Shown: in pieces, positions 2,508 through 57,816 of the stretch
Position numbering within the stretch: the stretch's first letter is position 1
Layout of the letters: each line of letters opens with the position of its first letter
The notes under the pieces: model-generated
What the model was told of the DNA's origin: nothing
Databases searched by the model: none
Seen by the model: only the letters and a program-made list of their open reading frames with translations
IMG/VR virus record: IMGVR_UViG_3300013104_000001
Location: 223,407-287,406 of that record
Length of the DNA stretch: 64,000 bases
Direction: 5' to 3' (one strand)
Translations under genes and position numbers: made by a program

Positions 2508-3977
2508 ATGTCTGATGTACTCGATTATTACAATGGTTTCCTGGACTCCACTAACAACCCGCGTGATGAGCATGGCGTGGTGTTGTACGAAAGCAACACC
2601 GGTGATTTAAAGCCGGTGATGATTGACGGTAAGAAACTGATCGTTCCAACCAAGGAATTCCAAAAGAAACCTGACTGGACTCAGTTCGTGGCATTCCATC
2701 CGTTGTCTGAGTCAATCGCTCGTGGTGAATCTGAAGTACTGCAGAAGGCACGTACACTGATTGGCCTGCGTCTGTTCTACAAATACATCGAACTGTCTGA
2801 AGCGTTACTGATGCTGGCGGTAGATAGCAACGCACAGGCGAAGCTGACACCAAGCACCATGAAACTGCTGGAAGGCCTGGGTGATGCTGATGCGAAGACT
2901 GTTGAGAACTTCTCAAAGATCATTGCAAAAGCGAAAGTCAACTTTGATGGCGGTGAAAACCGCTGTCTCATCTCTCTGTTCTTAAAACGCGGCGGTACCA
3001 TGAACGGTACGAAGTTTGCCCGTTTGTGTGTAGCAAGCTTCCCGTATTACGAAGCGCTGCAGAAGATCGAAGATGAAGCGGCTGATAAGCGTCAGGTGTT
3101 TGGTGTGCCATTGCGTGCTAAAGACATCAAAGTGCTGAAACGCCTGCATGAAGTGATTCTGCCAAACAGCGATGACGGCGTGTATTCAATCGGTACCAAC
3201 TCACAGATCGCTCCTTACTGGGGTGCGCTGATGATGACGTATGTCAATCTGTTGAATCAGTTCAACAGCCTGGTGAAGCCGTTCTCTAAAGTGATCAAAT
3301 CACTGAAGACCGTCAACACTGACTGGGATGTGGGTGACGAACTGCAGAAGTTCCGTAACCAGATTCCACCGATGCCGTATAACGAAGGTGCGGATGCAAC
3401 AACTCCACCACCTGAAGCGCAGCAGCAGCCGGCAGTACAGCAGCAGGTTCCTCAGGCACAACCGCAACAGCTAACGCAGCAACCAGTTGCTGTTCAACAA
3501 CCGCAGGCACAGCCACAGTACGCACCGCAGTATACGCCAGCGGCAGCGGTACATCCGACACCTGCTCCGGTAAACCACACTAAGACCAGCAATTCAAATG
3601 GTATTAGCTTTGGTGATGCGCTGAGTAAGTCGCCGGTAGCTATGGCGGTACCGCAGATGTATCCACAGATGCAACAAATGCCGCAGATGGCACAGATGTA
3701 TCCACAGATGCAAATGCCACTGCAGATGGCAATGCCGCCAGTAGCAGGCCAACAGATGTATCCGCAAATGATGCTTCCACAAGGTCACATGCCGATGCCT
3801 CCTGTCGGTGGTCAGCCACAGCAGCCGATGTATCAGCAACCACAAATGCCAATGTACCAACAGCCGCAGATGCAAATGTATCCGCAGCAGATGCCAGGGA
3901 TGCAGCAGATGTATCCTCAGCAGCAAATGATGCAACAGCCAATGATGCAACCTGGGATGTTCCAGTTCCAGCGTTAA
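2508..3977 (+). CDS. picA: Probable phage-nucleus protein import factor (PicA/Imp1, phiKZ gp69 position) with a Q/M/P-rich C-terminal tail
   Basis: 489 aa. It sits between the gp68-like and gp70-like genes. A globular N-terminal ~295 aa is followed by a low-complexity tail. Confidence 0.55.
   Translation: MSDVLDYYNGFLDSTNNPRDEHGVVLYESNTGDLKPVMIDGKKLIVPTKEFQKKPDWTQFVAFHPLSESIARGESEVLQKARTLIGLRLFYKYIELSEALLMLAVDSNAQAKLTPSTMKLLEGLGDADAKTVENFSKIIAKAKVNFDGGENRCLISLFLKRGGTMNGTKFARLCVASFPYYEALQKIEDEAADKRQVFGVPLRAKDIKVLKRLHEVILPNSDDGVYSIGTNSQIAPYWGALMMTYVNLLNQFNSLVKPFSKVIKSLKTVNTDWDVGDELQKFRNQIPPMPYNEGADATTPPPEAQQQPAVQQQVPQAQPQQLTQQPVAVQQPQAQPQYAPQYTPAAAVHPTPAPVNHTKTSNSNGISFGDALSKSPVAMAVPQMYPQMQQMPQMAQMYPQMQMPLQMAMPPVAGQQMYPQMMLPQGHMPMPPVGGQPQQPMYQQPQMPMYQQPQMQMYPQQMPGMQQMYPQQQMMQQPMMQPGMFQFQR
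3657..3974 (+). repeat. Coding low-complexity repeat: five MYPQ and two MYQQ units in a Q/M/P-rich tail
   Basis: Read directly from the translation. CAGATGTATCC recurs in the DNA. Confidence 0.9.
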
Positions 3978-17723: not shown

Positions 17724-18125
17724 ATGGGCAACGCATATTGTAAAGTCGTAGCGATTCACGGCATCTATGTCCATAGTGCGGCAATGGAAGCAATTTCAGC
17801 GAAGTATAAAAAGTGCTTTCGTTTGGCATACAACTTCGTCAATGCTACCCAGCTATCGCAGCAACTCAAGTTAGCGTCACGCAACAGCGAGATCCTGATC
17901 GTTGATACCAGCGAATTCACCCGCCGGGCATTGGTCAATTTGGATGAGCAGTTCTATTGCATCTATCCAGGTGGTGAGCAACCCACCGAAGCTTCACAGA
18001 AACACCAACGTGGTTGCCGTATGACGCCTCACTGTATGCATATTGAAATCGGCGATATAAACGATTTTGAGAGCCTTAAGTGGGAAATACGACCTGATGC
18101 TGGTATTCGCATCACACGTCCTTAG
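17724..18125 (+). CDS. Hypothetical protein
   Basis: The ATG at 17724 follows a GAGGT RBS. 133 aa. Confidence 0.7.
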   Translation: MGNAYCKVVAIHGIYVHSAAMEAISAKYKKCFRLAYNFVNATQLSQQLKLASRNSEILIVDTSEFTRRALVNLDEQFYCIYPGGEQPTEASQKHQRGCRMTPHCMHIEIGDINDFESLKWEIRPDAGIRITRP

Positions 18126-18127
18126 GA

Positions 18128-18166
18128 CGGCATATAACCCCTCCGTAATGGAGGGGCTTTTATGAC
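18128..18166. terminator. Bidirectional terminator, CGGCATA-hairpin-TTTTATGAC
   Basis: CCCCTCC-GTAAT-GGAGGGG between convergent genes. Confidence 0.85.
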
Positions 18167-18182
18167 ACTGCTTTTTTTTTTA

Positions 18183-18598: not shown

Positions 18599-19069
18599 TT
18601 ATTTGCCGGCCAACTTTGCAAGTTCTTCATGTAACTTTTTCATTTCTTTCTGACCGTCAGGTAACTCTTTGTTGAAGTCAGCTAATCCGTACATAAGTTC
18701 TTTACGCTTACAGTACGGGTACTTCATCCATTGCTGGAATGATAAACCGAATTTGCCCAGTATATCACATCTTAGATATTCTAAAACATAATTTCGGTAT
18801 CCGACCAGATCCAGACTGTTCTCCTGCTCTGACTGCATCACGAGAGAGAAAGGCGATGTCTCTGCGTCATGATCGACAATACCAAAGGTATCGTCGTAGA
18901 GTTCAGTCATACGGATCAACGGATATTCCCGATGGGCCGTCAGGAACTTGGGATCATCTAATGCCTTATCCCAAGCATCACTGCGATCAGTAACGTCTAA
19001 ACCGAAATCCCAATGGATTAGATGTCGGCTTGTTCGAACGTCTGATTCAACGTATTCACCATGAGGGTA
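18599..19069 (-). CDS. -1 frame extension of the gp77-like protein (gp76 position); tail/baseplate assembly chaperone 'GT/E-prime'-like domain
   Basis: The frame is open from a TAA at 19081-19079 to 18599, with no ATG/GTG/TTG for about 50 codons after the slippery run. The C-terminal FGLSFQQWMKYPYCKRKELM resembles P2 GpE'/T4 gp51-type motifs. Confidence 0.7.
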   Translation of the reverse strand, partial: YPHGEYVESDVRTSRHLIHWDFGLDVTDRSDAWDKALDDPKFLTAHREYPLIRMTELYDDTFGIVDHDAETSPFSLVMQSEQENSLDLVGYRNYVLEYLRCDILGKFGLSFQQWMKYPYCKRKELMYGLADFNKELPDGQKEMKKLHEELAKLAGK

Positions 19070-20664
19070 AAAAAAACTTTACCGACGTTCAGCGGCGTGT
19101 ACGCAGGGAACATGTTGTTCACCATCGGCTGTCTGGTTTCACAGACTGGGCATTTCCAACGCGGCATTGCCATCACGCCAATAGTCACCCGGTTAATGAA
19201 TGCACCGACCTGATCGTTGAACGCTTTACGGATATCCTGCACGGCACTGAACTGTTTCAGCAGGCTAGCGATGTCTTCTTCGCTATCAACATATTTGCCA
19301 TCATCAAATTCGATACGTGCAATCCAGTGTGCGTAACCACGCATAGAGGAGAGAGCAGCTTGTTTGTTGATGTACTCCTCACGCTGTTCACGTGTGAGAC
19401 TGTTGTTAAACGTTTCAGCAACCGCCTGCTCGATGGTGTTGATCCAGTCCTGACCAGCATCAGTTTTCTGTTCGAGAGATGGCACGCGCAGATAGTACTT
19501 AACGCCAGCGACTTCGAAGGTATTGTCTTTCAGAACTTCGAAGGCGGTTTGGTAAGCAATAACCTGTTCAGCCGTGCGAGCAGAATAATGCGACATGTGT
19601 TCGCGCTGTACACTGCTCAGACGTGAGTTGTCGATGATTGTCAGACGAGCGATGTTAACTTTAGCCGCTTCGATGTGGTTACATTTCTTCGGATCAACAA
19701 CGCAACCCTGAGCGATCTGATAACCAGATTTGAAACGTGCACCGAGATAGGCCGCAGCCAGCAGATCCAGATCAGGTTCTTTGATCAGACCACGCAGGAC
19801 TTTCTTATCGGTGGTGCCGATAGATGAATCGGTGATCATACCCAACAGGAAGTCAGCCATGTGTTTGCGCACAATGACATCGAGGTTGTTGAATACAATA
19901 CCGTTAGTACGACGACCGATGGTGACCTTTTCATTCATCAATGAAGTTTGCATATCAACAAACTCATCGTCACCGGCAATCAGGATGGTGACCCACAGAC
20001 CGGAATGCGGCAAAGGCAGATGGACATAGTCACCCATGTTCATAACTGAACGCGCACGCATAACTGCCTGCTGGCCAGTTAAACGACCATCTTCGCTGAC
20101 AGATTTCTTAACCGGTGGTTTAGAGATACCCTGGACCGTACCGTTTGGTAACAGGATGCCCTGCAGCCATTCAGCACCGCTGTAAGTAATGGTGTCGCGT
20201 AACCCATCTTTATAAGACAGGTTAGAGATTGCAGCACTGACCAGAGCCAGCCAAATAAAGGCGCGTTCCTGGCCGTGCAGGCTGATGATCTCTTTCAGTA
20301 ACTTAGTGTCACCTGAAGCATCATCAAGTTCATTCATCATCGCAACTGCTTCATCGTAGTTGCTGTGAATGATCGACATCACGCCGCCATCAGTAGCGTC
20401 TTTGATATTAGCAAACGCTTTGATGATCGGGTTCTGGTTTCTGTTAGAGATCGGCTGTTCAACACGCAGGTCTTCCTGCTCAGTTACTTCAGCCTCTGGC
20501 AGCACACCCGGCCCGCTTGCAGGTTGGTCTTCATCAACAGGGGTAGGCGCTGGTGCCGGCGCTGACTTTACATCAACACGTGGTGAATCGGGATCAACAG
20601 CAGGAACAGCATTGACCACTTCTTCGTTCTGCTGTGAAGCAGTGACGTTGTTATCATCGGACAT
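19018..20664 (-). CDS. Conserved protein (phiKZ gp77 position), T4 gp26-like tail/baseplate-hub assembly chaperone
   Basis: 548 aa with an acidic disordered N-terminus. The later architecture is DLDLL..C-x6-C..LRVP..WI..CPVC..FF. GGAAGGA RBS. Confidence 0.65.
   Translation of the reverse strand: MSDDNNVTASQQNEEVVNAVPAVDPDSPRVDVKSAPAPAPTPVDEDQPASGPGVLPEAEVTEQEDLRVEQPISNRNQNPIIKAFANIKDATDGGVMSIIHSNYDEAVAMMNELDDASGDTKLLKEIISLHGQERAFIWLALVSAAISNLSYKDGLRDTITYSGAEWLQGILLPNGTVQGISKPPVKKSVSEDGRLTGQQAVMRARSVMNMGDYVHLPLPHSGLWVTILIAGDDEFVDMQTSLMNEKVTIGRRTNGIVFNNLDVIVRKHMADFLLGMITDSSIGTTDKKVLRGLIKEPDLDLLAAAYLGARFKSGYQIAQGCVVDPKKCNHIEAAKVNIARLTIIDNSRLSSVQREHMSHYSARTAEQVIAYQTAFEVLKDNTFEVAGVKYYLRVPSLEQKTDAGQDWINTIEQAVAETFNNSLTREQREEYINKQAALSSMRGYAHWIARIEFDDGKYVDSEEDIASLLKQFSAVQDIRKAFNDQVGAFINRVTIGVMAMPRWKCPVCETRQPMVNNMFPAYTPLNVGKVFFTLMVNTLNQTFEQADI
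19069..19076 (-). other. Slippery site GTT-TTT-TTT-ACC (U UUU UUU), putative programmed -1 frameshift
   Basis: A T8 run on the coding strand, correctly phased as X XXY YYZ. The -1 frame opens immediately upstream of the run. Confidence 0.7.
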
Positions 20665-29740: not shown

Positions 29741-29759
29741 TCTATTCTTTTTTTTTTGT

Positions 29760-51064: not shown

Positions 51065-51081
51065 ACCAAAAGGTGAAATGC

Positions 51082-53397
51082 ATGACCAGCATGAATACAT
51101 TGGGTCCAGCACAGTCAACGTTGCTTGCTGATGAATCAGACGGTAAACAAAAAAAGAAAGTTACCGACAACGCCAAAACCGAATCTACCGAGATGTCAAT
51201 TGAGATCTTGAAGAAAACCAGTAAAGAGAAACCTGAGACTACCGAGGGCGACGAACCTGCTTTCGGGTTTGGTAGTGAAGGCTACGCAATGCTGGACAGT
51301 ATGTCGTTTGACTTAACCGAACACAGCGACAAATATATCCAAGAGCTTCTGGATAAAATTACCACCATCGTGATTGAAGCCAACGGCGATCTTAATAAGA
51401 AAGACCTGGAGAAGATCCGTAACGTCGGTCTGGAAGATTACCGTGATCTGGCACAAGCTGCTATGAAGCGCATCATGCAGTTTATCCGTTGGTCTATTAA
51501 CCAAGGCAAAGAAGGGATCAAGCGTGTCGCTGATCGTCTGGGCCGGTTAGGTATGAAGTCGATGTATGTTGAGCGTAAACTCGATATCTCAACTGACAGT
51601 TCATTGCCTACGGATAAGTTTGTATTAGCACGTTCTTTCCCATTGTTGATGCTTGCTGATAAACCGCCAGCGAATGCAATGGATGTGCTGAACTCGTTGA
51701 ATAAAACCAAGTATCTATTCACCTTGGTCCACAACGATTATCAGAACTACCAGAACCTGTTTAAACAAGCTGTTGCAACTGGCTCACGTTCTGAAACGCT
51801 GGAGATGATCAATAACTATTTGAATTCACTCTCAGGTCGTTTAGGCGCTAAGCCCAATCCGCAGTTTAATAACAACCTGAGCTTTAACTATCTGCCAGGT
51901 GGTTATCGTCTGGTGTTCTCAACGGGCGATTCATTTGCCGATTGCTCTGCGATACTTGTGCGCGTACCTGGTCAGTATAGTGTTGCGCCGTCTGCACCGC
52001 GTCCTGATAAGTCGAGCCTGGTTCGCTTGATGGCTGAGATCAAACAGTTCCTGCGCACCATCAATGAGATCTATGGAAAAGTCTCTAGTCGTTTGGAGTC
52101 TGACTTCCGTAATATCTCCCGCAGTGCTGAACGCGATATTAAGACGTTTGACTCGTCTGTTGATATCCGTACTGCATCGACAACCGTTGAATGGTTTGTT
52201 GAACAGCAGTCACGTATTTTCACTCGTACGATGATGTTGTCATGTTCGGTATTGAATGCGTGCCTGGACTACTGTATCGCTGCTATTGGCGGTAAGCCTG
52301 CTGCCGGTATGGAAGACTTCGATGACAGCTACACTATCGAAGCGCTCGGTGAGCAACTGGATTCCATTGATGATCGTCTACGTAGTATTGAAGTAGATGC
52401 ATCGGTTATTCAATCTATCGGGGACAACAAAGACCTGGTTGACTGTGATAACGATTATGTAATCCGTCAGCTGATTGAGACCAATGCAACCGAACCATTC
52501 ACGCCGGGTTACGGTATTGATAACCTGCGTAACATGTGGCATTTGGTACGAGCCGGTAAAACCACTGAAGTGATTACCCGTCGTTTAGGTGCGATCATGG
52601 ATGCGACATCCGATCTGGATACTTCGGTAAAATTCATGAAGACGCTCTTCACTGAAGGTCGTTTATTTGAATGCCGGACAACGGATGATTACATTGCTGA
52701 CTTTACTGCCGGTCATCCACTGTGTTCATTCCTGCACCGTGCTGAGCGTGAATCATTAGGTTCAGCGCAGATTGCTAACTACCTCGAGCAGAACGTTGAT
52801 AAGGTCAGTGCAACAGTCACGACACTTATGGTCTTTGCTGAAACACTGAGCGATACCGTTGTTGATGGTGAGTTTACCGTTAGTCGGTTGAAGGAGTTTA
52901 TGTTGAACGCTCCTCAATTACCATTTACATCAGCGATGCTTTGCGGCGGGTATGAGATCAAGGAACGTTCAGAAAAGCTTGCAGGTTTAGTTGTACGCAG
53001 CTATACACTGGAACACGTCAAAGACTTGTCACCAATTGAAAGCTTTGATGGTCATGACAGTGAAATGAATGGGTTCATTGATCAGCAGGTTAAACGGTAC
53101 GAAGCAGAGTACGCTCGCTTAGCACGTATCGTTGAATTGCTGCAAGTGGGCACAGGTCATCTGCGTTATATCACTGCAGCGGTTGTCGATAACCTTAACG
53201 CCGGTGGTTTGAAAGGTGAAGGGGATAACTGGGTGTATTCAGCAATGGAGTACTTGACTGTTGCGACTCGCCAGTACCGTTGGATGTATCGCATGACAAT
53301 CCAGCTCGCTATGTATAACCGACTGACAATTGAGGCTGCGAATCAGTATATGGCAGGAGGGTTCTATGGAAACGACGAGCAACAAGAGTCTGTATAA
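51082..53397 (+). CDS. Large internal head protein, apparently two modules joined by an internal processing site
   Basis: About 771 aa. FGSEG and VGLED occur near the N-terminus and AGMED internally at 52303-52317. Confidence 0.7.
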   Translation: MTSMNTLGPAQSTLLADESDGKQKKKVTDNAKTESTEMSIEILKKTSKEKPETTEGDEPAFGFGSEGYAMLDSMSFDLTEHSDKYIQELLDKITTIVIEANGDLNKKDLEKIRNVGLEDYRDLAQAAMKRIMQFIRWSINQGKEGIKRVADRLGRLGMKSMYVERKLDISTDSSLPTDKFVLARSFPLLMLADKPPANAMDVLNSLNKTKYLFTLVHNDYQNYQNLFKQAVATGSRSETLEMINNYLNSLSGRLGAKPNPQFNNNLSFNYLPGGYRLVFSTGDSFADCSAILVRVPGQYSVAPSAPRPDKSSLVRLMAEIKQFLRTINEIYGKVSSRLESDFRNISRSAERDIKTFDSSVDIRTASTTVEWFVEQQSRIFTRTMMLSCSVLNACLDYCIAAIGGKPAAGMEDFDDSYTIEALGEQLDSIDDRLRSIEVDASVIQSIGDNKDLVDCDNDYVIRQLIETNATEPFTPGYGIDNLRNMWHLVRAGKTTEVITRRLGAIMDATSDLDTSVKFMKTLFTEGRLFECRTTDDYIADFTAGHPLCSFLHRAERESLGSAQIANYLEQNVDKVSATVTTLMVFAETLSDTVVDGEFTVSRLKEFMLNAPQLPFTSAMLCGGYEIKERSEKLAGLVVRSYTLEHVKDLSPIESFDGHDSEMNGFIDQQVKRYEAEYARLARIVELLQVGTGHLRYITAAVVDNLNAGGLKGEGDNWVYSAMEYLTVATRQYRWMYRMTIQLAMYNRLTIEAANQYMAGGFYGNDEQQESV

Positions 53398-54516: not shown

Positions 54517-57500
54517 TTAGGCAGACATGCCTACCTGGCCAATCAGCTGGGAGCCAGTCCACAGCAGCGTGATGATGGTGAGGTTATCACCCAATGCTAC
54601 TGCTTCACCACGGGACCATAGAATGGTGTTGGTCCAGCTCATGTTACCGCCTTTACCAGTTACGATCAGAACGATCGGCTGAGTACGAGCAGATGCTGGC
54701 AGGTTGGCGAAGGTGATGCCTTTATCAGAGGTACCAGTGAAGCGGAAGACGTTGTTCTTGCTCACGTCCAGCGACAGGGTGGTACCAGTGACATCGAGGG
54801 CTGCTACGTCGTAACGATCAAAGACAATCGCGAGATCGATCCACTGACCATCTTTACGGACTTTCGCTTTACCATCGAAGTTAGCATCGAAGACGTTACC
54901 GCCACCCAGGGTACCTAACTGTGACCAAGCGGTCGTAGAGGTCTTCTGGAAGAACGCCTGGCTAGAGGAGTTCAGGAAGTAGTCGCCTACTGCGCCATCA
55001 GCGGAACTTGGGTCACGGGCAAAGACGATCCACTTAGTACCTGGGTCACCTTTATCACCTTTGTTACCTTTGTCACCCTGATCACCCTTCGCACCAGTCA
55101 GACCACGCGCACCAGTGTCACCTTTCGGTCCTTGGATTGGGCCAACGTTCACCCACTGCGTGCCATCCCATGCGTAGAAGTTAGTGCCGACCATGTAGCC
55201 GTCACCTGCGGTGTTACCAGAAGCAGGCAGATCACCTGCGGTTGCTTTGGAACCAAGGATCTTGATACCTGCACCGATATCACCCTTCGCACCGGTTGCA
55301 CCAACATCACCCTGCGGACCACGAATAGAACCTGCAGCTACCCATGCCGTGCCATTCCAGGAATAGATCAGCATGTTGTCGGTAACGGTGTAGGTTGCGC
55401 CAATCAGGTTACCGGTTGTTGGTAACTGGTTAGCCGCATCAACATGACCACGGATAATGATGGAGTTACCTTGCGGACCTACATCACCCTGGACACCCTG
55501 ATCACCTTTAACACCAGTTGCACCAGTGTCACCCTTGGCACCTGTAGCACCGATGTCGCCTTTATCACCTTTGACACCTTGGGCACCAGACATATCGCCC
55601 ATGTCGATCCAGGCGGTACCGTTAGACATCCATGAGTGCTTGGTGTCAGCAGTTGTGTAATACCAACCGGTGTTACCCGCAGCTGCAGTAGGTAATGCAG
55701 ACTGAGTTGCTACCTGGCCTTTAGGGATAACTGCTGTACCGGTATCACCTTTGTCGCCCTTCGCACCCGTGGCTCCGATATCCCCTTTCGCACCTGTCGC
55801 GCCAGTGTCACCTTTCGGCCCACGGAACGGTCCGGTGTTGGTCCAGGTACCAGAGAGGTAAACATACAGGTTATCACCAACTACGTAAGCGTCACCTTCT
55901 GAGTTACCCGTGGTAGGCAGTGAACCAGCGTCGGCAGCAGAACCTTTAATCATCAGGCCCTGACCAGTGTCGCCTTTATCACCTTTTGCTCCGGTTGCCC
56001 CGGTGTCGCCTTTAGCGCCAGCTGCACCAGTATCGCCTTTGGCACCAACATCACCTTTAGCGCCTGTAGCACCCGTATCACCCTTCGCACCCTGTGTACC
56101 TTGTGCGCCACGTACATCACCCTGATCTACCCAGGTAGTGCCGTTGTAGATGAACTGATGACCGGCAGAAGTACCGCCAGTGACATTGTACAGCCAACCG
56201 GTAACAGGAGAAGCAACTGAAGCCAGATCTTCGAACGCTGCTACAGTACCACGTGGGCTGACAGAAGTACCTGGGTCACCTTTGTCGCCTTTGTCTCCTG
56301 TATCGCCTTTGGCACCGGTTGCACCGATGTCACCTTTTGGACCCTGAATAGGACCGAGGTTTTCAAAGGCACTGCCCGTCCAGCCCCAGAAGTTACCATT
56401 AATCAGATAACCCTGACCTAACGTACCAGTTGCAGGGAGCGCACTCTCATTATCGAGTTTGCCCATGATCTGGACGCCTGCGCCCATATCACCTTTCTCA
56501 CCCTGGTCGCCTTTGTCGCCTTTGGCACCAGTCGCACCAATGTCGCCTTTAGCACCAGTTGCGCCGGTATCACCTTTGTCGCCTTTAGCGCCGGTGTCGC
56601 CCTTATCGCCTTTCTCGCCTTTAGCACCTTGCGGGCCAACTTGACCGACGATAGACCATTGGGTACCATCCCAGACATACATCTGCTGGTTGATGATGTA
56701 CGCGTCACCATTGACTTGACCAGACTGAGGCAGGTCGTTGGTTGTAGCGAACGAACCACGGATCTGCAGACCGATGCCATCAGCACCTTTCAGTGAAGTC
56801 TGGTAATCTTCTACCGTGCCGGTATTGCCGTCATCCAACCACAGTTGGTAAGCAGATTTACCGTCTGGACCTTGCATGTTACCGAGGTCAACGAACGCCC
56901 CGTTAGACAGTGTCCAGTAGTGACCTTTGATAACGAAGGTATCGCCTTCGGTATAATCGGCCGGATCAGGCAGCTGTGATTTGTCATCAAGCTGATCGAT
57001 CATTTTGATACCAAGGCCAGGGTCACCTTTAGCACCGGCATCACCCTTATCACCTTTAGCACCTACTGCGCCGGCATCACCCTTCGCGCCAGTTGCACCC
57101 GTGTCGCCCTTGGCTCCGGCAGCACCGGTGTCTCCTTTGTCACCCTTGTCACCCTTAGCGCCTTTTACAACACCGAGTTTAACAAAAGTAGGATTGCCGT
57201 TGTTATCGGACCAGACATAGATTGCACCTTCATCCAGTGCGATGTAAGTATCACCCGGTGCATTACCCTGTGTTGGCAGAGCTGCGAAGTTAGCAACTTC
57301 ACCTTTCGGAGTGAAACCAATGCCATCTTTACCATTGGTACCAGCTGCACCAGTATCGCCTTTATCACCTTTGTCGCCTTTGGCACCAGTATCACCTTTA
57401 GCGCCGTTAGCTCCAACGACTTTACCCATCTTAACGAAAGCAGTACCTTTATAAACGTACAGGTTACCATCTTCCGTAACAACGTAGGTATCGCCATCGG

Positions 57501-57816
57501 TGTTGTTTGTGCTCGGCAGGTTAGCGATCAGATCGATATTGCCTTTTGGTGTAAAGCTAATACCGTCTTTACCATCTTTACCGTCAACACCATTAGTGCC
57601 GTCAGCACCGTTGGCTCCGGCATCACCTTTAGCGCCCGTAGCGCCGGTGTCACCTTTAGCACCGGTTGCACCGGTATCACCTTTCTGGCCCTTCAGTGCA
57701 CTGGCAGGGATCTTAACCGTCTTCCCTAGCTGTACAACTGGGACCAGTTCGCTACCATCAATAGCAACACCGGCAGGCAGACCACTAATCGGTAGTGGAG
57801 TATTTGTATCGGCCAT
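54517..57816 (-). CDS. Collagen-like fibre protein with ~11 interspersed globular repeats and a foldon-like trimerisation motif
   Basis: (G-X-Y)n blocks such as GAKGDTGATGAKGD alternate with ~45-aa G..KG..LP..GD.Y..W.G..W..G units. DGKAKVRKDGQWIDL lies at about 54832-54876. Confidence 0.85.
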   Translation of the reverse strand: MADTNTPLPISGLPAGVAIDGSELVPVVQLGKTVKIPASALKGQKGDTGATGAKGDTGATGAKGDAGANGADGTNGVDGKDGKDGISFTPKGNIDLIANLPSTNNTDGDTYVVTEDGNLYVYKGTAFVKMGKVVGANGAKGDTGAKGDKGDKGDTGAAGTNGKDGIGFTPKGEVANFAALPTQGNAPGDTYIALDEGAIYVWSDNNGNPTFVKLGVVKGAKGDKGDKGDTGAAGAKGDTGATGAKGDAGAVGAKGDKGDAGAKGDPGLGIKMIDQLDDKSQLPDPADYTEGDTFVIKGHYWTLSNGAFVDLGNMQGPDGKSAYQLWLDDGNTGTVEDYQTSLKGADGIGLQIRGSFATTNDLPQSGQVNGDAYIINQQMYVWDGTQWSIVGQVGPQGAKGEKGDKGDTGAKGDKGDTGATGAKGDIGATGAKGDKGDQGEKGDMGAGVQIMGKLDNESALPATGTLGQGYLINGNFWGWTGSAFENLGPIQGPKGDIGATGAKGDTGDKGDKGDPGTSVSPRGTVAAFEDLASVASPVTGWLYNVTGGTSAGHQFIYNGTTWVDQGDVRGAQGTQGAKGDTGATGAKGDVGAKGDTGAAGAKGDTGATGAKGDKGDTGQGLMIKGSAADAGSLPTTGNSEGDAYVVGDNLYVYLSGTWTNTGPFRGPKGDTGATGAKGDIGATGAKGDKGDTGTAVIPKGQVATQSALPTAAAGNTGWYYTTADTKHSWMSNGTAWIDMGDMSGAQGVKGDKGDIGATGAKGDTGATGVKGDQGVQGDVGPQGNSIIIRGHVDAANQLPTTGNLIGATYTVTDNMLIYSWNGTAWVAAGSIRGPQGDVGATGAKGDIGAGIKILGSKATAGDLPASGNTAGDGYMVGTNFYAWDGTQWVNVGPIQGPKGDTGARGLTGAKGDQGDKGNKGDKGDPGTKWIVFARDPSSADGAVGDYFLNSSSQAFFQKTSTTAWSQLGTLGGGNVFDANFDGKAKVRKDGQWIDLAIVFDRYDVAALDVTGTTLSLDVSKNNVFRFTGTSDKGITFANLPASARTQPIVLIVTGKGGNMSWTNTILWSRGEAVALGDNLTIITLLWTGSQLIGQVGMSA

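Follow-up and report, generated by a model that had tools for sequence, protein, structure and literature searches.

The window analysed here is a stretch of 64,000 nucleotides (positions 223,407 to 287,406 of IMG/VR record IMGVR_UViG_3300013104_000001). On its minus strand lies an open reading frame, ORF1 (20664-19018), which encodes 548 residues and ends ...GKVFFTLMVNTLNQTFEQADI*. ORF1 belongs to the phiKZ gp77 / 201phi2-1 gp136 family; it has a disordered N-terminus (residues 1-93), four invariant cysteines (C321, C328, C505 and C508) and a near-invariant Phe-Phe (FF) at 531-532. The FF is encoded within a T8 run at 19076-19069, which reads GGT AAA GTT TTT TTT ACC, placing the last seven bases (19075-19069) as a T_TTT_TTT heptamer in X_XXY_YYZ phase. 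The -1 frame is closed by a TAA at 19081-19079, one codon upstream of the heptamer, which rules out an upstream start for the -1 ORF in this genome. It then remains open for 158 codons (FFYPHGEYVESDVR...) as far as the stop at 18601-18599. The first possible start codon in this frame is a TTG (18919), 52 codons after the slip site; it begins the 106-aa ORF (18919-18599) listed by the ORF finder. The absence of a good ribosome binding site for this TTG, asserted in the preliminary description, is a matter of judgement, since a weak GGGAA lies about 6 nt upstream, but neither this element nor the TTG is conserved in relatives. Immediately 3′ of the heptamer, positions 19068-19018 are dual coding; the 0 frame encodes the tail TLMVNTLNQTFEQADI and the stop at 19020-19018, while the -1 frame encodes YPHGEYVESDVRTSRHL, and all three codon positions are conserved. 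The distance from the first base of the heptamer to the 0-frame stop is fixed at 58 nt in the close clade. The -1 extension as a whole (19075-18599) would add about 156 residues to the first 532 of ORF1 to give a fusion of about 688 aa, and its predicted shape is a flexible linker followed by a helical domain, although confidence in the model is low (pLDDT 60). ORF1 is flanked on the same strand by genes of unknown function, upstream one of 157 aa at the phiKZ gp78 position (21155-20682) and downstream one of 118 aa (18539-18183), the latter followed by a hairpin at 18138-18156.

Every sequence-level statement in the preliminary description of this site proved correct. The heptamer is more than chance. 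It is the only in-phase U_UUU_UUU among 45 long ORFs of the window, and of 16 FF dipeptides it is the only one written T|TTT|TTT, in a genome stretch where TTC is the preferred Phe codon (385 to 277). A slippery heptamer is found in phase at the homologous site in about 40 non-duplicate loci across Chimalliviridae, from isolates (Erwinia, Salmonella, Proteus, Pseudomonas phiKZ-like and 201phi2-1, SPN3US, PCH45, Klebsiella, Serratia, Xanthomonas, Ralstonia and Vibrio) and from metagenomes. Of these, 35 are canonical (26 T_TTT_TTT, 7 T_TTT_TTC, 1 T_TTT_TTG and 1 G_GGT_TTT) and 5 near-canonical; the loci are related, thus the counts are not independent events. One subclade has only G/A_TTT_TTT, and RVTF4 also has a further frame break inside the extension. 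Given FF, the codon usage of each gene predicts 4.0 T_TTT_TTY sites in 35 loci, whereas 31 are observed; the first Phe codon is TTT in 35 of 35, even in genes where TTT makes up 5-15% of Phe codons. Where FF has been lost slipperiness is retained, SFLL being written T_TTT_TTG, LGFQ G_GGT_TTT and QVFI G_GTT_TTT. The site is therefore conserved beyond what the encoded amino acids require.

The -1 extension is homologous family-wide, with a length of 148-174 codons. Its first possible start codon wanders from 25 to 87 codons after the slip, while amino-acid conservation begins at the slip itself. The stretch between the 0-frame stop and the first possible start (19017-18920) evolves as protein-coding only in the -1 frame. 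In this start-less region the -1 frame contains stops in 0 of 12 sequences and has a synonymous:nonsynonymous ratio of 427:868; the other two frames have stops in 11 of 12 and 12 of 12, with ratios of 96:1242 and 71:1247. Codon periodicity also flips from the 0 frame to the -1 frame across the site. Both forms look selected. The best 150 of 1,743 family clusters (at 50% identity) all end within about 40 aa of the profile end, so none of these is an in-frame fusion, although a rare fusion cannot be excluded among the remaining ~1,600 clusters, which were not listed. The 0-frame tail is itself conserved (...ADI, also in SPN3US and Wellington).

We looked for elements that might stimulate frameshifting, which in this class would be a 3′ hairpin or pseudoknot at 5-9 nt or an upstream SD-like sequence, and are not obligatory. 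Consensus folding of 10 close relatives with RNAalifold gave only one alignment-supported hairpin, about 39 nt 3′ of the heptamer and without covariation. Neither this, nor folding of the single sequence against shuffles, nor downstream folding of 28 loci against shuffles (unremarkable energies, mean z of -0.3) revealed a conserved structure at the expected distance. A few lineages do have strong hairpins, for example L041, the lineage with G_GTT_TTT, with z = -3.7. With no conserved element, the efficiency of slippage may be low.

Assigning a function to ORF1 is less straightforward. Searches of Pfam, PHROGs (phrog_4585 for ORF1, phrog_13274 for the extension) and PDB sequences with ORF1 and the extension returned nothing informative; the window's own protein has no Pfam hit, and Foldseek of ORF1 against the PDB found no match (best E = 2.7). 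There is, however, a remote link to T4 gp26 (Pfam PF12322, ‘T4_baseplate’), which is listed as a hub assembly chaperone (PMC3004832, Table 2). T4 gp26 matches PF12322 over its full length; the best-scoring ORF1 homologue (L013) reaches 23.5 bits against a curated cut-off of 24.5, over profile positions 107-212, and only 1 of 14 and 1 of 90 family members hit at E ≤ 1e-3. PF12322 is nonetheless the only Pfam family that recurs among members. Profile-profile alignment with hhalign gave two collinear segments with low probabilities of 4% and 29%, ORF1 382-405 with gp26 106-129 and ORF1 499-535 (CPxC...FFTLM) with gp26 182-208 (CPEC...FFELL-end). The C-terminal ~170 residues of ORF1 line up collinearly with gp26 residues 106-208, including a VK.xLRxPS-like strand, the CPxC motif and a terminal FFxL(L/M). 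Foldseek against BFVD matched T4-like ‘baseplate hub assembly’ proteins at E = 2e-5 to 1.4e-4, with probability 1.0 and target TM of about 0.5. One independent GenBank annotation cites gp26, and the hub of the chimallivirus Goslar is T4-like (10.64898/2026.04.21.720040). We regard this evidence as suggestive and consistent, but remote. ORF1 is 2.5 times larger than gp26, with an extra ~380 N-terminal residues; T4 writes its FF as TTC TTT, without a slippery site, and stops three codons later with no extension; and the second T4 product, gp26′, comes from an internal in-frame start and not from a frameshift.

The extension has no detectable relative. Comparison with hhalign gave probabilities of 0.1% against T4 gp51, 0.2% against gp26 and 0.2% against gp25 (P2 E′ was not among the proteins compared), and Foldseek of the low-confidence model found only orthologous uncharacterised ORFs. 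As to whether the products occur in the virion, the family matches no chain sequence in the PDB copy searched, whose content of cryo-EM virion structures was not established, and the 201phi2-1 record flags gp138 as found by mass spectrometry but carries no such note for gp136 or gp135; this rests on record annotation and not on a virion proteome table.

The interpretation offered in the preliminary description is partly supported. Its central claim, a hidden and conserved -1 frameshift joining two ‘hypothetical’ core genes at the phiKZ gp77 position, is strongly supported by comparison across the family, and the proposed gp26-like layout of the upstream protein is modestly supported. The suggested resemblance of the downstream part to gp51/E′ is not supported, nor is the designation of the locus as a G/GT-type tail assembly chaperone other than as an analogy of mechanism.

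Our preferred explanation, held with good confidence overall when weighted towards the recoding, is a programmed -1 ribosomal frameshift conserved throughout the nucleus-forming jumbo phages (Chimalliviridae). In this view, most ribosomes that reach U_UUU_UUU at codons 531-532 continue in the 0 frame to give the 548-aa protein. A fraction would slip back one base, with both tRNA-Phe re-pairing perfectly, and read on in the -1 frame to give the ~688-aa protein with junction ...GKVFF|YPHGEY... (predicted junction peptide VFFYPHGEYVESDVR here and ...TFFYFGGLEVKPDGVVNDLR in phiKZ-type phages; HLIHWDFGLDVTDR is an example of a predicted peptide from the start-less stretch). In the long form the short C-terminal helix of ORF1 would be replaced by the flexible linker and helical domain. 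Sequence comparison establishes the slip site, the frame relationship and -1 coding where there is no start codon; that slippage takes place on the ribosome, that the fusion protein is made and that both products are needed in a set ratio are inferences, made without a junction peptide, ribosome profiling or reporter data. We are highly confident of the recoding. We are about evenly balanced on the further inference that ORF1 is an enlarged, distant relative of T4 gp26 acting as a baseplate-hub assembly chaperone that is not built into the particle. The two forms would then act like lambda G/GT, a common body binding one assembly partner and the rarer extended form bringing in a second.

The closest analogues are lambda G/GT, P2 E/E+E′ and the conserved tail-assembly-chaperone (TAC) frameshift of long-tailed phages (Xu, Hendrix & Duda 2004; listed in the references of PMC9024508). 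In these, a -1 slip on a heptamer close to the 3′ end of the upstream gene gives a major short form and a minor form extended at the C-terminus by the ‘next gene’; no strong RNA stimulator is needed, and the products are assembly helpers rather than virion parts. At the level of sequence inference the present locus shares the -1 frameshift near the 3′ end and the C-terminally extended second product. However, its body is 548 aa rather than about 140 aa, there are no TAC hits in Pfam or PHROGs, and Foldseek matches to TACs have E of 1.5-7.7 and probability of at most 0.15. The pair does not lie between tail tube and tape-measure genes; its neighbours are small unknown genes and RNA polymerase beta′, and the nearest tail-like gene in the window, a fibre gene at 54517-57816, is about 34 kb away. 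The heptamer is U_UUU_UUU/C and not G_GGA_AAG. The locus would work like G/GT, but is not a member of that family by sequence, fold or position. The same class of heptamer is found at slippery-site-only -1 frameshifts such as the alphavirus 6K/TF site U_UUU_UUA, and G_GUU_UUU in cardioviruses and arteriviruses; L041 uses exactly the latter. Those are eukaryotic RNA viruses, some of which use trans-acting protein stimulators.

Of the alternatives, the one that survives best accepts the recoding but holds that the protein has nothing to do with the tail, being for example a zinc-ribbon protein that serves the virion RNA polymerase or another nucleus-related process. The neighbours, a virion RNA polymerase beta′ piece and unknown core genes rather than tail genes, and the four invariant cysteines, which suggest a zinc site, are consistent with this, and the gp26 link is below curated thresholds. 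The recurrence of PF12322, the collinear matches reaching the very C-terminus of gp26, the Foldseek matches and the CPxC motif of gp26 itself speak against it, and we consider it unlikely but possible. A second alternative is transcriptional slippage, in which the RNA polymerase, possibly the phage's own non-virion enzyme, stutters on the T run and adds one U to a fraction of the mRNAs, ordinary translation of which would give the same fusion protein. The window and its close relatives have T8 and many others T7, a one-base insertion would give the same VFFY junction, and no cis stimulator for ribosomal slippage was found; the slippage behaviour of the phage polymerases is unknown. However, seven Vibrio-type and other loci keep only T6 as T_TTT_TTC, and exceptions have T4-T5 (G_GGT_TTT, G_GTT_TTT) yet still form slippery heptamers in the correct phase. 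Runs that short are poor slippage templates for bacterial polymerases. It is the heptamer pattern and not the run length that is conserved; the run varies from 4 to 8 across lineages, whereas a transcriptional slippage site would be a long homopolymer (about 8-9 or more) conserved as a run. We regard this route as improbable. Less likely still are two ordinary genes, the downstream one translated from its own start (TTG 18919 or ATG 18910), perhaps by coupling to termination of ORF1, with the T run merely encoding a structurally needed FF. All database records inspected do annotate two genes, FF is present at the matching spot of T4 gp26 and so has a protein-level role, and several lineages (RP12, RSF1, LucasX, 201phi2-1 and Vibrio phages) have a start codon soon after the ORF1 stop, where the extension could also be made on its own. 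Against this, the 52 codons before the first start are conserved as protein, free of stops and under purifying selection only in the -1 frame, start positions are not conserved, and the excess of T_TTT_TTY and the survival of slipperiness without FF would be unexplained. An assembly error, with a true run of T9 and a single 688-aa gene, was raised in the preliminary description; homopolymers are error-prone and one extra T would fuse the frames, but it is refuted by dozens of independently sequenced isolates and metagenome assemblies that keep the same frame relationship with T-runs of 4 to 8, by the absence of a fused ORF among the best 150 family representatives and by the conserved 0-frame tail.

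A more speculative and improbable possibility is that, as the frameshift is ancient and universal in the family and has no conserved cis-acting stimulator, its efficiency might be set in trans by a phage factor acting on the host ribosome during infection. These phages are reported to make ribosome-binding proteins (PMC11849849), and G_GUU_UUU, found in one lineage here, is the site that cardioviruses and arteriviruses use for protein-stimulated frameshifting. If so, this would be the first trans-regulated frameshift in a bacteriophage, and it would also identify the gp26 family as the T4-type counterpart of G/GT.

Our literature searches found no report of this frameshift; mentions of ‘gp77’ in three papers refer to the numbering of other phages. 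The finding would turn two ‘hypothetical’ core genes of every nucleus-forming jumbo phage into one recoded locus with a testable, putative role in baseplate-hub assembly, and correct the annotation of every record inspected here, and probably of the more than 200 phage records that hold the gene. It provides a clean, family-wide natural series of U-rich slip sites with no obvious stimulator for studying frameshifting in bacteria. These phages are candidates for therapy and engineering, and anyone recoding or synthesising such genomes needs to know that the T run must not be ‘cleaned up’. The finding also suggests that the frameshift-controlled two-form chaperone, known from lambda-like and P2-like tails, exists in a very different, T4-like tail lineage, built on an unrelated protein, which bears on the old question of what T4 gp26 and gp51 do.

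On the minus strand the window contains a 548-aa ORF (ORF1, 20664-19018), which near its 3' end reads GGT AAA GTT TTT TTT ACC. The T8 run is located at 19076-19069 and its last seven bases, 19075-19069, form T_TTT_TTT in the X_XXY_YYZ phase of the 0 frame. The -1 frame has a TAA at 19081-19079, one codon before the heptamer, and is then open for 158 codons to the stop at 18601-18599. The first ATG/GTG/TTG in that frame is the TTG at 18919, 52 codons after the slip. A -1 slip would give ...GKVFF|YPHGEYVESDVR... and a product of 688 aa. The preliminary description of this site therefore holds, and all of its coordinates are correct. The site is also unusual within the window: TTC is the preferred Phe codon (385 to 277), only 1 of 16 FF dipeptides is written T|TTT|TTT, and this is the only in-phase U_UUU_UUU in 45 long ORFs. 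We note that an in-phase A_AAA_AAG, the classic bacterial slip site, occurs elsewhere in the window on the plus strand (51150-51156), at codons 26-28 of a 774-aa ORF (51073-53397, phrog_11736). There the -1 frame closes after 17 codons, so that at most a short truncated product could result.

The closest phage records are the Erwinia Agricanvirus phages RAY, Special G and AH06, which are only about 73% identical in DNA over about half of the query. Closer relatives (69-87% protein identity for this gene) were found only as contigs of 190-288 kb from public sequencing runs. The window carries split RNA polymerase subunits, a DNA polymerase, a helicase and a tail fibre gene; the phage therefore appears to be an undescribed relative of that group of nucleus-forming jumbo phages. 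ORF1 was assigned to phrog_4585, and notes in the 201phi2-1 record tie the family to phiKZ gp77 and EL gp47. A tblastn search located the gene in 219 phage records and a profile search found 1,743 clusters at 50% identity. A GC-rich hairpin (arms CCCCTCC and GGAGGGG, loop GTAAT) followed by a T10 run (18138-18181) lies between the convergent genes ending at 18125 (+) and 18183 (-), and is probably a two-way terminator that ends the minus-strand operon holding the putatively recoded gene. A second T10 run lies at 29748.

The junction was read in about 44 loci. Of these, 22 were annotated isolates (Erwinia, Salmonella, Proteus, Pseudomonas phiKZ-like, 201phi2-1, RVTF4, DT01, SPN3US, PCH45, Eowyn, Kodama, FBKp24, LucasX, RP12, RSF1, Wellington and three Vibrio phages) and the rest were IMG/VR, JGI, ENA or Logan contigs. 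With a single exception, every one has a homologous -1 ORF of about 148-174 codons starting at the same aligned site. Excluding duplicates, the heptamer is T_TTT_TTT in 26 loci, T_TTT_TTC in 7, G_TTT_TTT in 3, and T_TTT_TTG, G_GGT_TTT, A_TTT_TTT and G_GTT_TTT in 1 locus each. The exception is Pseudomonas phage RVTF4 (3039-3562 of the locus sequence examined), which has only A_TTT_TTT at the site. Its extension is also broken by a further frame change just after the conserved FGL motif, the rest of the domain continuing in another frame as the annotated small ORF. This is either a sequencing error or a lineage that has split the fusion, and the arrangement can thus be broken, or was mis-sequenced, in this phage. 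All annotated records call two genes. The downstream gene is given arbitrary starts, so that its annotated length runs from 68 to about 150 aa. The MadMel version is a 182-aa protein in BFVD, which matches the 182-position profile of phrog_13274, whose first 26 positions lie before the slip point of the window.

In the 12 closest sequences the first possible start in the -1 frame lies 25 to 87 codons after the slip, yet amino-acid conservation begins at the slip itself (FFYP..EY....RHLIHWDFG...DRSDAWD.AL.DPKFL). Column conservation by codon position changes across the site. Upstream, the variable position is the third position of the 0 frame (0.60 against 0.80 and 0.84); after the 0-frame stop it is the third position of the -1 frame (0.70 against 0.81 and 0.82, then 0.61 against 0.74 and 0.81). 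In the overlap, the 51 nt after the heptamer up to and including the 0-frame stop, all three positions are conserved (0.79-0.87), as expected for dual coding. We then examined the 31 codons right after the 0-frame stop, where most sequences have no start codon yet. In the -1 frame 0 of 12 sequences have a stop and the synonymous to nonsynonymous ratio is 427:868, whereas 11 of 12 have a stop in the 0 frame (96:1242) and 12 of 12 in the +1 frame (71:1247).

FF is nearly invariant in the protein, and T4 gp26 has FF at the matching spot, so FF has a protein-level role. The way it is encoded, however, is not explained by that role. Given FF, each gene's own codon usage predicts 4.0 T_TTT_TTY sites among 35 loci, and 31 are observed. 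The first Phe codon is TTT in 35 of 35, even in genes where TTT is 5-15% of Phe codons, such as those of RSF1, RP12, DT01 and L019 (another of the loci examined). The loci are related and are not independent trials, although they do span the depth of the family, down to about 20% protein identity. Three representatives that lost FF still carry an in-phase slippery heptamer at the site. T4 gene 26, by contrast, ends ...TTC TTT GAG TTA CTA TAA (3800-3812 of the T4 locus sequence examined, minus strand), which is not slippery, and gene 25 starts in the -1 frame overlapping that stop (TAATG). T4 instead has an internal in-frame product, 26', and thus gets two forms of the same family by a different route.

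Both products seem to matter. The best 150 of the 1,743 cluster representatives all end within about 40 residues of the profile end and none is an in-frame fusion. Of 162 family proteins examined (13 close relatives plus the representatives), 155 have FF followed by a short tail, mostly of 13-16 aa. The 0-frame tail is conserved: it is FFTL... throughout, ending ...ADI in the close clade and ...YADIG in SPN3US and Wellington. In the AlphaFold model it is part of a predicted terminal helix (527-546). The extension is predicted to start with about 27 low-confidence residues, probably a flexible linker, followed by helices. The slip would therefore swap the end of a helix for a linker plus a helical domain.

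The slip site, the frame relationship and coding in the -1 frame ahead of any start codon are established here by sequence comparison; that the shift is made by the ribosome, that both forms are needed and what the protein does are inferred. A one-U insertion by a polymerase would give the same protein, and the T7-T8 runs could allow it. What is conserved, though, is the phased heptamer and not the run, since T_TTT_TTC has only six Ts, and G_GGT_TTT and G_GTT_TTT have four or five. We therefore favour ribosomal slippage and regard transcriptional slippage as an unlikely, but surviving, alternative. Two ordinary genes are very unlikely given the conserved -1 coding ahead of the first start codon, although some lineages could also start the extension independently. 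A homopolymer miscall cannot explain a T run that ranges from 4 to 8 while the frame relationship stays the same.

No conserved stimulator of frameshifting was found. RNAalifold reports only a hairpin (GCCGA...UCGG) about 39 nt downstream, which encloses the 0-frame stop and has no covariation. The block GCCGACATCTAATCCA spanning that stop (19012-19027, minus strand), which can form the 5' arm of this hairpin, is identical at the same site in the related loci L001-L004, even in phages with only about 40% protein identity. In the absence of covariation, dual coding may be the whole explanation. The distance of 58 nt from the first base of the heptamer to the 0-frame stop is invariant in this clade. 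The window's own fold is unremarkable (z = -1.2), and across 28 diverse loci the mean z of the 60 nt downstream is -0.3. One lineage, represented by JGI contig Ga0172373_10004823 (2754-2820), has the weakest heptamer (G_GTT_TTT, with FF replaced by VF) and also the strongest predicted structure right after the site (-26 kcal/mol, z = -3.7). This could be compensation, but it is a single case. Lambda G/GT also needs little beyond its heptamer.

Searches of Pfam and of the PDB sequences, and Foldseek against the PDB, gave nothing for the window's own protein. Several weak, independent and mutually consistent signals nevertheless point to T4 gp26. One GenBank record (DT01) annotates the orthologue with reference to gp26. 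T4 gp26 covers PF12322 end to end, and one ORF1 homologue (L013) hits profile positions 107-212 at 23.5 bits, below the cut-off of 24.5; PF12322 is the only family that recurs in scans of 14 and of 90 members. Using hhalign, ORF1 382-405 aligns with gp26 106-129 and, with the deeper profile, ORF1 499-535 (...CPVC...VFFTLM) aligns with gp26 182-208 (...CPEC...EFFELL, the very end of gp26), although with probabilities of only 4% and 29%. Foldseek against the predicted viral structures of BFVD finds T4-like 'baseplate hub assembly protein' and 'hub subunit' entries at E = 2e-5 to 1.4e-4, with probability 1.0 and target TM about 0.5. In the same search, hits ranked 13-16 (A0A7S9XG96, G4KKH9, A0A141HSH7 and A0A8S5TGZ1), proteins of 389-669 aa, match ORF1 at E = 1e-7 to 5e-11 with only 11-14% identity. 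They lie between the chimallivirus family and the T4-like gp26 proteins, and could show whether the frameshift reaches beyond this family. T4 gp26 and gp51 are listed as hub assembly chaperones (PMC3004832, Table 2), and the chimallivirus hub is described as closely resembling that of T4 (10.64898/2026.04.21.720040). We therefore read ORF1 as an enlarged, remote gp26 relative; a role in hub assembly is inferred from this remote similarity, and we consider it about as likely as not. The extension has no detectable relative outside the orthologous small ORFs, and the resemblance to gp51/E' proposed in the preliminary description is not supported.

The interpretation offered there, of a recoded tail chaperone pair of the G/GT type, is thus only partly supported. 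In mechanism and logic the locus, as inferred, is like lambda G/GT and P2 E/E+E', but in membership it is not: the protein is four times larger, it has no TAC fold or family, and it is not next to tube or tape-measure genes. Full-text literature searches found no report of this frameshift, although subscription-only papers lay outside their scope and prior mention cannot be excluded. The locus is best described as a further form of the frameshift-controlled assembly-chaperone theme, built, on the sequence and structural similarities available, on a gp26-like protein in the T4-like tails of jumbo phages.
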